From Octopus bimaculoides (taxonomy: Eukaryota), in contig NC_068998.1 of NCBI RefSeq assembly GCF_001194135.2, positions 28,984,663 through 29,023,853 on the forward strand: 39,191 nt of DNA, written 5' to 3'. The position numbers were made by a program, and so were the translations under genes. This document shows positions 6,745-33,114 of the stretch, one piece after another (the stretch's first letter is position 1; every line of letters starts with the position of its first letter). The notes under the pieces were generated by a model that saw nothing but the letters and a program-made list of their open reading frames with translations, made no database searches and was not told the DNA's origin.

Positions 6745-7645
6745 ACGTGCACACATGTGTATGAGTATGTGTATGTGTTTGTCAATTTGGTGTGTTACCT
6801 CAAAAATATGTTTATAGAAATATGATCCAGAGCTTTATTTTCTCCTTAAATTTTTAAAGCTAAATTGTTCATTATCTATTGATTTGCCTACATGTAAAGA
6901 AAAGATATTGATTTGCATGTATGCTAAGAAAAAAAAAATTATTTTCATATTGACAACTGATGTCAGTTTACAGCCCAAAATCTATATTTCTCTCTGCTAG
7001 CTCTGTTTTGGAATAACACTCACTATACACATAGCAGTTTACAGATACTCACAATTGGATTACTATAACCTACATGCTACATTTTACATGTTTTAATAGG
7101 ATTGATAACTTCTATTTACTGTGATATTTTCAATAAGTTTTATTATGAAATCTTCAAATATACCTCTATATATTGTGCTGTTCGTGATAACCTTGCATTT
7201 ACTTTGATTGGAAGACTACTACAGTGATGCCACTACCTAAATCAGATTGACTTAATATTTACTCTTGTTACTATTATTCTATGCATGTAAGCTCTATAAT
7301 GTACCAATTATGTCTTAGATTTACTTATCAACAGGCTCTATTCCATTTAATGTTACATATTCTTTTGATGGGCTTGTTATCATAGTAGCATGACTTAAAG
7401 AATATTCTTATGGATGTCGTATGCTTTGTTTAGAACAAGCTGATATGTACTCCTTGTTGATGTTTCAATACTACAAAACAAATACAATGCTATTGTTTTT
7501 TTATATATTTACCTACTTGCTCTTCTTGGATTGAATTCTATTGTACATGGCTTATCTTCTGTTCCACAGAAGAGGAAGCTATCATTAACCATACACCAGA
7601 ATCTCAATTATATTTTGATAAATTGGTTCCATTATATTTGTATGG

Positions 7646-7974
7646 ATGAGTGGGCATAGGAGTCGAAGTCTTTTTCGTCGGCGCCATCCGAGTACCAGTA
7701 GTGACTTGGACAGTCTTACTGTACCAGTAATTACAGTCAACATGCAATATCTATCTCCCAATCTTAATACCTCATCGGGCAGCCAAGGAAAAGCTCGCAA
7801 CTGGCTGTCAAAATTAAGACGAGAGCCACGAAGTAAAAGCAAAAATTCTTTGTCTTCTTCTTCCAGACATTCAGAGGATTTGATTGTTACCCCATTTGCC
7901 CAGATTCTGGCCAGTTTACGCAGTGTTCGGAATAATTACCTCAACTTAACCAATGTGAACTTACCAAAAGAGAG
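7646..7974 (+). CDS. PDE4: Putative alternative first coding exon of PDE4: 74-aa unique N-terminus fused in frame to the UCR1 C-terminal half
   Basis: ATG 7646 follows in-frame stops (7586, 7619) and is open into [10 protein letters not shown]. Nine CpGs at 7664-7830 versus two in the preceding ~660 bp. Ends at donor AG|GTTAGT (7974/7975). Confidence 0.6.
7867..7974 (+). CDS. PDE4: Internal exon of cAMP-specific 3',5'-cyclic phosphodiesterase 4 (dunce-like), UCR1 C-terminal half
   Basis: [30 protein letters not shown] matches the PDE4/dunce UCR1 motif HG(D/E)DLIVTPFAQ(V/I)LASLR(S/T)VRNN. Acceptor TTTGTCTTCTTCTTCCAG|A (7866/7867), donor AG|GTTAGT. 108 nt, phase 2-2. Confidence 0.93.
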
Positions 7975-8442
7975 GTTAGTAATGATTTCTACTTTTTCTT
8001 ATGTCAGTTGAAAAATGTAATAAAATAATGTCAATTAATAATTATCAATAAGTATATACACATTAAAAGACACATTGCTACAATATGCATACTAGACACA
8101 TACACACATATATACACATGTGTTTTGTGTGTGTGTGTGTAATTATGAATTGATATGTGGGTGTGTGAGCATGTTTGAGAGTATGGGGTTGCAAATATAC
8201 ATGTTGAATAACAGAATATGTGTACCTGCTTAAATGTCATTAATTCACATCTGCAGCAGGCATTTTATTTTGTTCCTAAGCATGACAACTCCATGTGCCT
8301 CTGTTACTCTTGCAATATGGAGTTAGTACCTGATTTCCCAGGAATATTTTCAGCTTCGTAAATCTACTAACAGGTGACAACTGTGAGCTTCTTTAATGTG
8401 TTCATACCTATTAATCCAATGCATGCATTTTTTTAAAGTTTA

Positions 8443-18389: not shown

Positions 18390-19370
18390 TTCACACCATC
18401 CTTGATCTCCCCACCAACCATGGTCTGATGTTTTCCTCATCTATGTTTGGGTGTCAAAGAATTTAACGAAGTCTCCATTCCAACTACTACATGGTCTTCC
18501 TCTCCTTTTCTTTTTTTTTTCTAGACATAGTGTCCAATCTGTCCATTTGGTATACCACTTATTGTCCTTTCTTCTAAACACATGTCCTGCAAAAGACCAT
18601 TTCAGAGTTTTTATTTTCCAGACAATACATTAAAACTGTTACCCCTCTTATCCTATTGTTTCTCCACCCATCCATTTTGTTAAATCTTGAGCATTTTCCT
18701 TTCCATGATTCTTTGTGTTGCTCTTAATTTATTTTCATTGCTCTTGGTAGTTCATATTTCTGATGCATATGTAATGGTTGAAGACCTTTCTTTTTAGACA
18801 CATGGACAAAATTACTGCGCATATGGTTCAATTTACAAAAGGCTTCCCATCCCAAGTATATTCATTGTTCGATTTCTTTGGTCTGATTTTAATCCTTTAA
18901 ACATATTTGTCCAAGATAGGTGTATTGGTGTACGTGTTCAACTATTTCATCATTTATTACTACATTTTCAGCTGTGGTTAGATGGTTGGAAAATACCTTC
19001 ATTTGATTTAATATCTATTCTGAGTTCACATTTTTTGTTTTCTTCTTTTAGTTCTCTGAGGATTTCTGTTGATTTTTTAATGCTTTTGGAAATAAGTACA
19101 ATACCATCAGCAAATTTGAGATGATTTAGCATGATATTTATTCTTTTATCTGACCAATATAAGATTTTAAAAATCTTTTCTAATACAGGTGTGAATAATT
19201 TGGGTAATATAGTGTCTGCTTGTGTGCCTCCTTTACCATTTTTGATATCAATTGCTTTGTTGTTTATAGTTGTTGTAGTTCTACAGTTGGTGTACACATT
19301 CTCTATTAACTTGAAATAATTTCCTTCGATTCCCTTTTCTTCCAGTATATCATCAATTTCCACAGAATCT
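18390..19370 (-). mobile_element. 5'-truncated RTE LINE inserted inside the R4/Dong element
   Basis: DSVEIDDILEEKGIEGNYFKLIENVY, GGTQADTILPKLFT (QGD motif), LNHLKFADGIVLIS (FADD motif), C-terminal KKRRGRPCSSWNGDFVKFF. Confidence 0.85.
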
Positions 19371-20880: not shown

Positions 20881-21363
20881 TGTTACAATTGATTTCTGTT
20901 ACTCCCATCTACAAGTGGATGATAGTCACAGCACAGTATAATAGAGCATTCGTGTGTGTGTGTGTGTGTGTGTGTGCATGTGTGTACGTGTGCATGTAGT
21001 ACATGAATTCATGAATACAAAGAAAGGTATACTAAATGCCATATAAGAGAATTACCTTTACTTTGAGAGAAACGTAAATAAGCAGCTAGCAGCAATTGCA
21101 ACTGTCTAAGAATGAGGAGGGGAGATAATCTCAAGCAATTAACAATGTTTTGGAAATAACTTGCTATTTATGAAAAGGTAGTGTTTGTTTCTTTCTGGAG
21201 ACCCATACATACACACTCACAAAGACGTGCACACACACTCACAAAGACATGCACGCACACACGCACACACACACACACACACACACGGAGGATTTTTACA
21301 TGGAATTATATAAATGGCTAGACTTTGAAGGACTGTTATGAGAACTTGTTCAATAATGAGTAT

Positions 21364-21752
21364 TGTCGTGGCACTCTGTCGGTTATGACGCCGAGGGTTC
21401 CAGTTGATCCGATCAACAGAGCATCATGCTCGTGAAATTAACATGCAAGTCACTGAGCACTCCACAGATACGTGTACCCTTAATGTAGTTCTCGGGGATA
21501 TTCAGCATGACACAGTGTGACAAGGCTGACCCTTTGAAACACAAGTACAACAGAAACAGGGAGAAAGAATGAGAGAAAGTTGTGGTGAAAGAGTACAGCA
21601 GGGTTTGCCACCACCACCCCTACTGAAGCCTCATGAAACTTCAGGTGTTTTTGCTCAATAAACACTCACAACGCTTGGTCTGGGAATTGAAACCAAGATC
21701 CTATGACCACAAGTCTGCTGCCCTAACCACTGGGCCATTGCACCTCCACCAT
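21364..21752 (-). mobile_element. Full-length tRNA-derived SINE with 12-bp target-site duplication
   Basis: Minus-strand head GGAGGTGCAATGGCCCAGTGGTTAGGGCAGCAGAC...GGTTTCAATTCCC (A and B boxes). TSD AATAATGAGTAT at 21352-21363 and 21753-21764. Confidence 0.88.
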
Positions 21753-31236: not shown

Positions 31237-31716
31237 GATTAGATTACTTAGATAACTTTCGGCCGAAGTTGACTCAGGCCATGTCTAATTTAATAACACC
31301 ACCTGGAAGAGATACACAGTCAGCTCTGAGGAACCGTAGCCCATTCAAGCAGAGGGTTTCTGTTTTCAGAGACATATCTGGGTGTGGGTGGTTTATCTGG
31401 TATTTATTGGGGGTAATCATCTAGGGATTGTTTGAATGCCGTGAAGTCACTTTCCTCCTTTATATGTGTCTGGCATGATGTTGAAGAGAGCAGGGCCAAT
31501 TGAGGTGAAATAGTTCTGTCATGGTGTTGTGATATGACACGAACATTTCTGTAGTGGACAGATGGCACAGGAGCCAAGCCTCGGACGAATTTTAACGATG
31601 GGCAATGTTGATGGAATATTTTCCACATCATACAGATGATATAAAGCTCACAGCGGTGGTGAAGGGAGTAAAGCTTGAGCTTTTTTGAGTCAATCCCAAT
31701 AGTCAAGGCTTGTCAT
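31237..31716 (-). mobile_element. 5'-truncated CR1/L2-group LINE 3' end with (ATCTA)-like tail
   Basis: KLKLYSLHHRCELYIICMMWKIF, FTAFKQSLDDY/IPDKPPTP..; tail TAGATTAGATTACTTAGAT on +. Related to the 1-196 fragment. Confidence 0.75.
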
Positions 31717-31725
31717 GTCCTCCTC

Positions 31726-32110
31726 TGCAGACCTCCACCAAGCAGCTCATTTTAAAATAGATACACATGTAAAATTACTAATAGAGAAACGAAAATAAAC
31801 TTTGAAAACAGCAACGCCACCATAGGTTACGTGGAAACGATGAATGTGTTTTCAAGGGAGATAATCTAAGAACGTAACGTAATACTTCATGTAAAGTAAA
31901 CATAACAAGTGAATAATCCTTCAAGAATCCATAAAAATTCCCAGATCACTACCAAAATTTCATCATCTGTTCCTTGTGTCATTACCAACTTTTTCTGCAA
32001 GTTTCATCAAATACTGTTCACAACGTTTTGAGTTATTTTTCAAACAGACGGACAGACGGACAAACCAACGCCAATGAAAACATAATCTCCTTCCTTGGTG
32101 GAGGTAATAA
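31726..32110 (-). mobile_element. Non-autonomous Helentron/DINE-1-like element
   Basis: Minus-strand 5' end TTATTACCTCCACCAAGG..GAGATTATGTTTTC, internal (GTCCGTCT)n at 32045-32062, perfect 12-bp subterminal inverted repeat ACCTCCACCAAG (31731-31742) / CTTGGTGGAGGT (32094-32105). Confidence 0.65.
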
Positions 32111-32505: not shown

Positions 32506-33114
32506 TGGTGGTTGTCTACTCCTTAAACAGAGTTTGACCACCTCCTGCACCTACACCTTAGCCCTTTTATGGCGTCTGATGTGGCATTTTTAAACCAGAC
32601 AGTGTTTTGAAAAAACACCCACACAGATTGCACCTCTGATTTGCACTACCAATACCTGCAAGTAAGTTCTGCTCATTGTGGATCCTAACATGTCTTTTAA
32701 GACCCCCATTGGATTTGCAAACCCTCTGGCACACACCACATTCAAACGTGTGCACAGACATATAATCAGAATAGCTGGATGAGGTTTGTTTTCCATGGGT
32801 TCGCAGGTGAGATTTGAGGCCAGCCAAGGACAGACTTGGTCTGTCACAGACTGTGCACACAAAAAGGTCCTTGTCATTCACCTTCTCAGTCTTTACATTT
32901 TTCCTTAAATATCTCTTGAGCCCTGCTTGCATCATCTTGGCCTCTTCAAATGCTTTCACTCCACTCCACACCCTTGTTCGCCATCCAACTCGATCTGAAG
33001 CGAGGGCTTCTATATCTTTTTGGAGCCATTCCAATTGACTTCATAGCAGTCCTTATGCCATCCTTAAACCTTTTTTTAGGTTTATGCCGATAACGTTTCC
33101 CCTCTGCAAGCTCA

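Follow-up and report, generated by a model that had tools for sequence, protein, structure and literature searches.

We identified, in the PDE4 gene of Octopus bimaculoides, a segment (positions 7646–7866) that we read as the protein-coding portion of an alternative 5′ exon, giving rise to a predicted isoform with a unique 74-residue N-terminus and only the second half of UCR1; we put the probability of this reading at roughly 0.85. Positions are those of the window, i.e., the whole 39,191-nt stretch of chromosome 18 that was analysed (C18:28984663–29023853; NC_068998.1). PDE4, known as dunce in flies and as ApPDE4 in Aplysia, has a central role in cAMP-dependent learning. On the sequence evidence, the exon is a real, conserved and apparently unannotated alternative 5′ coding exon, and it supplies an isoform that has been missing from PDE4 in a model cephalopod; octopus PDE4 gene models, as well as isoform-specific probes and knock-downs, should take in the exon 7646–7974. 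In the model that we propose, transcription would start inside the 120-kb intron between the two UCR1 exons and the mRNA would continue, unspliced at the internal acceptor at 7866, into the second-half exon of UCR1, making this a hybrid first/internal exon; normal splicing at 7974 would then join it to the linker, UCR2 and catalytic exons, and translation from the ATG at 7646 would yield a predicted PDE4 of 664 residues.

The gene was mapped exon by exon in a whole-genome search with human PDE4D as query. The UCR1 second-half exon (75% identity to human PDE4D by tblastn; Table 1) is the one recognisable PDE4 exon inside the window, and its 35 residues are the same, 35 of 35, in octopus and cuttlefish. 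The RRES-carrying UCR1 first-half exon, which the initial annotation had noted as absent from the window, lies 120 kb upstream of this second-half exon at C18:28872540–28872728, and the UCR2 and catalytic exons are found 57–127 kb downstream. RefSeq octopus isoforms show either an ...IASEL/HSEDL or a ...QR/HSEDL junction at 7866/7867; hence, the strong acceptor that had been called at 7866, with its polypyrimidine tract and CAG (7864–7866), is genuinely in use.

Table 1. Coordinates of the features discussed in the text, in window positions.
Feature	Positions	Strand	Remarks
In-frame TAA stop	7619–7621	+	24 nt before the ATG; 5′ bound of the reading frame
Out-of-frame mini-uORF ATGGATGAGTGGGCATAG	7642–7659	+	Begins 4 nt before the main ATG and overlaps the start codon
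Start codon and codons 1–32, basic N-terminal extension	7646–7741	+	Known from two cephalopods only
Codons 33–74, probable counterpart of the Aplysia-type unique N-terminus	7742–7866	+	Based on position and a short motif
Predicted basic amphipathic helix, residues 46–58 (ARNWLSKLR)	7781–7819	+	A50, W53, L54 and L57 on one face
Polypyrimidine tract and CAG	7846–7866	+	3′ splice site of the long and MENPNY forms; codons NSLSSSSR in the readthrough isoform
UCR1 second-half exon	7867–7974	+	35 residues plus AG of an Arg codon; holds the RNN dimerisation motif
5′ splice site GTTAGT	7975–7980	+	AG/GTTAGT at 7974/7975; alignment of the spliced cuttlefish transcript stops exactly at 7974

Re-translation reproduced the reported open frame, which runs from the ATG at 7646–7648 through the acceptor at 7866 into the UCR1 exon (74 aa before the junction) within a plus-strand stop-to-stop frame of 7622–8011. 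Because stretches of at least 81 open codons precede 1.4% of all window positions (and 8 of the 210 candidate-acceptor/frame combinations), the frame on its own is suggestive, not decisive; it is the cross-species evidence given below that marks it as more than chance. A recount likewise returned the 9 CpGs reported for 7646–7866 as against 2 in the 660 nt before it. This corresponds to an observed/expected ratio of 0.83 (GC 0.44), compared with 0.14 in the preceding 660 nt, 0.20 across the whole window and a mean of 0.38 in 12 other coding exons of the same PDE4 gene. The CpG excess is thus real; by itself it is no proof of a promoter and may equally reflect Arg codons.

Comparison with cuttlefish provides the main support for a coding exon. 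A 684-aa protein (P0135), belonging to a 90%-identity cluster that adjoins the octopus cluster, has the same N-terminus followed by UCR2 and the catalytic domain. It is coded intron-free on a 2,286-nt Logan contig (L032, run SRR9970001; CDS 227–2281), which is accordingly a spliced mRNA, and its start is identical to that of a 239-aa NCBI gene model for PDE4 from Sepia/Acanthosepion pharaonis (CAE1304724.1, P0136), identifying the second species as a cuttlefish. The contig aligns to the window with 76% nucleotide identity over 7619–7974. Octopus and cuttlefish agree in 68 of the 74 encoded residues, and their nucleotide differences number 10, 5 and 35 at codon positions 1, 2 and 3, respectively (pN 0.059; pS 0.77, i.e., with the synonymous sites saturated). 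Octopods and decapodiforms split a few hundred million years ago. That 68 of 74 residues were kept despite saturated synonymous divergence argues that the segment is protein-coding and under strong purifying selection rather than an intron. The initial annotation had pointed to stops or frameshifts in related species as what would speak against it; the orthologous cuttlefish segment is intact and spliced (pS 0.77 versus pN 0.06). Its proposal that a transcript containing the segment specifies a unique N-terminus joined to half of UCR1 accordingly finds support in the spliced cuttlefish mRNA, the S. pharaonis gene model and the signature of purifying selection.

After residue 45, the cuttlefish N-terminus has seven additional Ser residues, encoded by TCA repeats (L032 nt 362–382, corresponding approximately to window position 7780); no other indel separates it from the octopus N-terminus. 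The 74-residue peptide is single-copy in the O. bimaculoides genome. The predicted octopus products, whether begun at M1 or M33 and whether completed with the O. bimaculoides or the O. sinensis body, had no exact match in a collection of 15 billion proteins, and the start was seen in none of the 15 members listed of the 27-member octopus PDE4 cluster. A search of a library of papers returned no text joining "truncated UCR1" with PDE4, none with MQKLNF or SRR9970001 and, among the papers listed for PDE4 together with cephalopods, none in which PDE4 is mentioned. An antisense frame of 116 codons opposite the exon (7585–7935, minus strand) is open in cuttlefish as well. We rejected it as a real gene: the differences sit on the third positions of the sense codons, and it is most likely a by-product of the sense constraint.

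The initial annotation had further suggested that this may be the equivalent, in cephalopods, of the short form known from Aplysia, and for this exon specifically the suggestion is backed by its position and a nine-residue motif. According to PMC4580752, plasma-membrane targeting of the Aplysia short form involves a hydrophobic N-terminus, a basic domain and UCR1–UCR2 oligomerisation (Jang et al. 2010, Learn Mem and Kim et al. 2014, JBC, as summarised there and in PMC6567041); the primers in Table 1 of PMC6567041 specify an Aplysia kurodai N-terminus beginning MQKLNF..., with RKSSTD at residues 25–30. By an exhaustive phmmer search, we recovered a protein (P0147; ...MQKLNFLSPLFYKNGKKCEKRQAGRKSSTDNRKG...NKER) that fits these primers, three synonymous changes aside. 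It is coded on a 926-nt Aplysia-like contig (L034), where its exon abuts the UCR1 second-half exon and ends in AG/gtgagt. A further 13 ORFs, including one from the sea slug Plakobranchus ocellatus and several bivalve-like ones, display the pattern MQK(L/I)..(F/Y)L(S/T)P.F, a basic/Ser stretch and then R directly followed by H(A/S)(E/D)DLIVTPF. An exon contiguous with the UCR1 second-half exon and read through the acceptor was found in octopus, on L034 and on two further mollusc contigs.

At the sequence level, the octopus peptide NMQYLSPNL matches KLNFLSPLF over nine columns (hhalign P = 0.0037, with a probability of just 8.9%). Cephalopod peptides outscore 91–98% of shuffles against an HMM of the non-cephalopod sequences (p = 0.02–0.09), and the motif Q[YF]L[ST]P, itself defined post hoc, appears in 1e-4 of shuffles. 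This modest sequence evidence, combined with identical genomic position, frame and junction, makes orthology to the Aplysia-type exon likely; spliced-mRNA expression of the Aplysia-type form is seen in the cuttlefish orthologue L032. Like the Aplysia short form, the predicted octopus form places a unique N-terminus directly in front of half of UCR1 (the second), with UCR2 and the catalytic domain coming next, and the two resemble each other in showing (Q/N)(Y/F)LSP, a run of basic residues and an Arg codon that takes in the acceptor AG. Unlike it, the cephalopod form begins with 32 additional residues, which are highly conserved, and lacks both the hydrophobic MQKLNF start and Cys residues; outside the nine-residue motif, the Aplysia and cephalopod N-termini are unalignable. 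The three gastropod/bivalve-like contigs examined contain no in-frame counterpart of residues 1–32. Membrane targeting has been demonstrated for the Aplysia form only; the composition and a predicted amphipathic helix of the octopus form are consistent with plasma-membrane targeting.

Turning to the 5′ end, the in-frame TAA upstream of the ATG recurs at the corresponding site in the cuttlefish transcript (nt 200), and 7622–7645 contains no AG dinucleotide; this fixes M1 as the start and precludes the splicing of any coding exon ahead of it. We also considered a variant, unlikely though worth serious attention, wherein 7646–7866 is not part of a first exon and one or more non-coding leader exons, transcribed from a distant promoter, are spliced to an alternative acceptor such as the ttccacAG at 7570. 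The pyrimidine-rich AG at 7569–7570 would serve such a leader, no promoter was identified and the cuttlefish 5′UTR is at least 226 nt long, of which just the last 27 nt align to the window (no L032 sequence alignable upstream of 7619 was found there). However, UTRs would be unalignable anyway at such divergence, and the 226-nt cuttlefish 5′UTR matches neither the window upstream of 7619 nor any other part of the octopus genome, so that it offers no positive evidence of a leader; moreover, the protein product is identical either way.

We also weighed the possibility that the exon is coding but is translated from Met33 (ATG 7742), with codons 1–32 forming 5′UTR. Met33 lines up with the MQK start of the Aplysia-type N-terminus and has an A at −3, while the context of the ATG at 7646 is weak, with T at −3 and A at +4 as in cuttlefish, and an upstream ATG overlaps it. 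Against this, 30 of residues 1–32 are identical in cuttlefish at a pS of 0.98 and a pN of 0.04, a substitution pattern that is explained by protein-level selection only and makes an exclusive start at Met33 very improbable; the corresponding figures for codons 33–74 are 38 of 42 identical residues, pS 0.61 and pN 0.07. With M1 retained as the start of the predicted isoform, both M1 and M33 might conceivably be used through leaky scanning. The cuttlefish transcript contains the identical motif ATGGATGAG at the mini-uORF, which is 7 codons long in that species. More speculatively, and in our estimation doubtfully, the 32-residue extension, the weak start context and the mini-uORF could together constitute a translational switch, with leaky scanning producing M1 and M33 proteoforms that adjust how cAMP is degraded locally in the nervous system of cephalopods. 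If so, the M1 proteoform would carry a 10-residue cluster and an RxRxxS kinase motif, that from M33 would represent the ancestral, Aplysia-like start, and the two would differ in membrane affinity or kinase control.

At its 3′ end, the segment performs a double duty. Third-position identity to cuttlefish is 30–50% in codons 1–50 and reaches 90% in codons 61–70, which comprise the polypyrimidine tract and AG. This rise indicates that the splice site is under double constraint, whereby the residues NSLSSSSR are dictated largely by the 3′ splice site of the other isoforms. The invariant Arg before the His is composed of the acceptor AG and the first base of the exon (last codon AGA, 7865–7867). 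The same tract and CAG precede the UCR1 exon in three other mollusc-like contigs, and coding use of a 3′ splice site is a feature shared by cephalopods and the gastropod- and bivalve-like contigs. The octopus tract also bears on a further candidate explanation, which we rejected as highly improbable, namely that the 74 N-terminal residues stem from a copy of the canonical UCR1 first-half exon that has since diverged, in which case the isoform would have an alternative UCR1a instead of none. With HMMER, the match to human PDE4D reached as far back as residue 65, across 17 residues, and a 12-residue stretch resembles its canonical counterpart by eye, but the alignment to the canonical first-half exon is no better than that of shuffles (local score 30 versus a mean of 28 for composition-preserving shuffles, p = 0.33; global p = 0.25), and the Ser-rich stretch is accounted for by the overlapping polypyrimidine tract. 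The least tenable account is that of an ordinary intron with a chance open frame and CpG excess and an intron-retaining pre-mRNA assembly in cuttlefish: frames this long do occur at the above 1.4% of positions, Logan contigs are automatic assemblies and the octopus product is without annotation, yet the residues were kept while about three-quarters of the synonymous sites changed, alignability is lost more than 27 nt before the ATG, the start codon and upstream stop are both conserved, an independent Sepia gene model begins identically and a like arrangement recurs on the gastropod- and bivalve-like contigs as well as in the short form cloned from Aplysia.

We reconstructed the 664-aa product of the proposed isoform from the UCR1 second half in the window and the remainder of RefSeq isoform X7 of the same gene. 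It is predicted to possess both elements that define a PDE4: an intact PDEase_I catalytic domain (PF00233, 5.5e-96) and the PDE4_UCR module (PF18100, 2.7e-47), matched from VTPF onwards over positions 1–119 of the 119 in the profile. The 74-residue N-terminus matched no Pfam family. With 14 K+R against 3 D+E (net +11), 23 S+T and no Cys, it is predicted to be mostly disordered, Ser-rich and strongly basic. The exception is the predicted helix at residues 46–58, to which single-sequence AlphaFold2 assigned a pLDDT of about 69, with the rest of the N-terminus being low-confidence; 12 residues of the helix region are the same in cuttlefish, and we infer a possible membrane-binding role for it.

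Mammalian PDE4 long forms have a single site for activation by PKA, RRESF in the first half of UCR1; in PDE4D5, UCR1 dimerises through its RNN motif, and both UCR2 capping and PKA activation need dimerisation (PMC6613170). The part of UCR1 retained in the octopus isoform includes SVRNNY, with its RNN, and the part lost is the one with RRESF. By analogy with the mammalian long forms, capping of the catalytic site by the UCR1/UCR2 module would persist, and release through PKA phosphorylation of the canonical UCR1 serine would be impossible; the isoform would thus lack the canonical UCR1 PKA feedback switch and may be uncoupled from PKA. No [RK][RK]x[ST] site is present in the 74-residue N-terminus, which has a single conserved RxRxxS motif (R11–S16). 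Directly after UCR1, both octopus and cuttlefish have an RRGS motif (TRRGSSTG; L032 nt 572–586, encoded by the next exon, outside the window) that fits the PKA consensus and is common to all UCR1b-containing isoforms, with similar RRGS motifs in Lingula and Candidula. The presence of RRGS and RxRxxS makes kinase control possible, and PKA input could still reach the protein through the former. By analogy with the Aplysia short form, the product would be a membrane-directed, dimerisation-competent PDE4.

Such a protein falls between the recognised classes. Mammalian short forms are without any UCR1 and monomeric, and the four PDE4 categories (long, short, supershort and dead-short) include none for half-UCR1 forms (PMC6613170). 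The octopus isoform shares with the mammalian long forms PDE4D3 and PDE4D5 the UCR1 helix/RNN interface, UCR2 and the catalytic domain but, unlike them, lacks RRESF, the RRES exon being bypassed. With the mammalian short and supershort forms it has in common an alternative start within the gene, an isoform-specific N-terminus and the absence of the UCR1 PKA site; in contrast to the short forms, it keeps the dimer-interface part of UCR1. Its UCR1 is thus neither complete with RRESF, as defines a long form, nor entirely absent, as defines a mammalian short form. Molluscs appear to conserve a PDE4 class outside the mammalian scheme that has no PKA switch in UCR1 and, by analogy, would be able to dimerise.

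At least two half-UCR1 classes occur in cephalopods, beginning MENPNY... and MSGHRS... The former comprises octopus RefSeq isoforms starting MENPNYSKVVLPRVLSTSALRVPKQRYSFWQR (O. bimaculoides X7/X8 and O. sinensis X7–X9), which are products of the same gene, likewise with half of UCR1, without RRES and with the same UCR1 exon. They use a different first exon (C18:28907108–28907203), 85 kb upstream, from which splicing leads to the acceptor at 7866, optionally via microexons of 7 residues, and their N-terminus is unrelated to the MSGHRS... start of the readthrough isoform. A word-based search with the MENPNY N-terminus returned no matches. N-termini of this type (STSALR.P...FWQR) are common to bivalves, Aplysia californica and a mayfly; A. 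californica thus also has the other half-UCR1 type (...STSALRIPRQRKTFWQRHAEDLIV), the counterpart of the octopus MENPNY isoforms. The microexons encode HHTGEAR and QHLGDQR, one or both of which are inserted at the UCR1-half junction in RefSeq octopus isoforms (QHLGEQR in cuttlefish), and in the octopus they are placed on C18 between 28907203 and 28984663. A cuttlefish-like Logan contig (P0002) has a further half-UCR1 start, MLLEWQNKDILSGKGK, followed by QHLGEQR and HSEDLIV. The window contains none of HHTGEAR, QHLGDQR, MENPNY and the cuttlefish MLLEWQNK start.

Elsewhere in the genome, seven uninterrupted open frames of 812–1153 codons (C24:10408175–10452932 and 11085355–11086281) match the PDE catalytic domain with 28–32% identity to human PDE4D; six of them lie within 45 kb, and the arrangement suggests PDE-like genes clustered in tandem, apparently without introns. 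Within the window, intronic mobile-element remnants are present at 1116–1580, 18968–19369 and 32567–33040 (all minus strand), and comprise two reverse-transcriptase fragments (RVT_1, below the Pfam cutoff) and one C2H2 zinc-finger ORF. CpG-richer patches occur at 1–500, 21001–21500 and 31501–32000.
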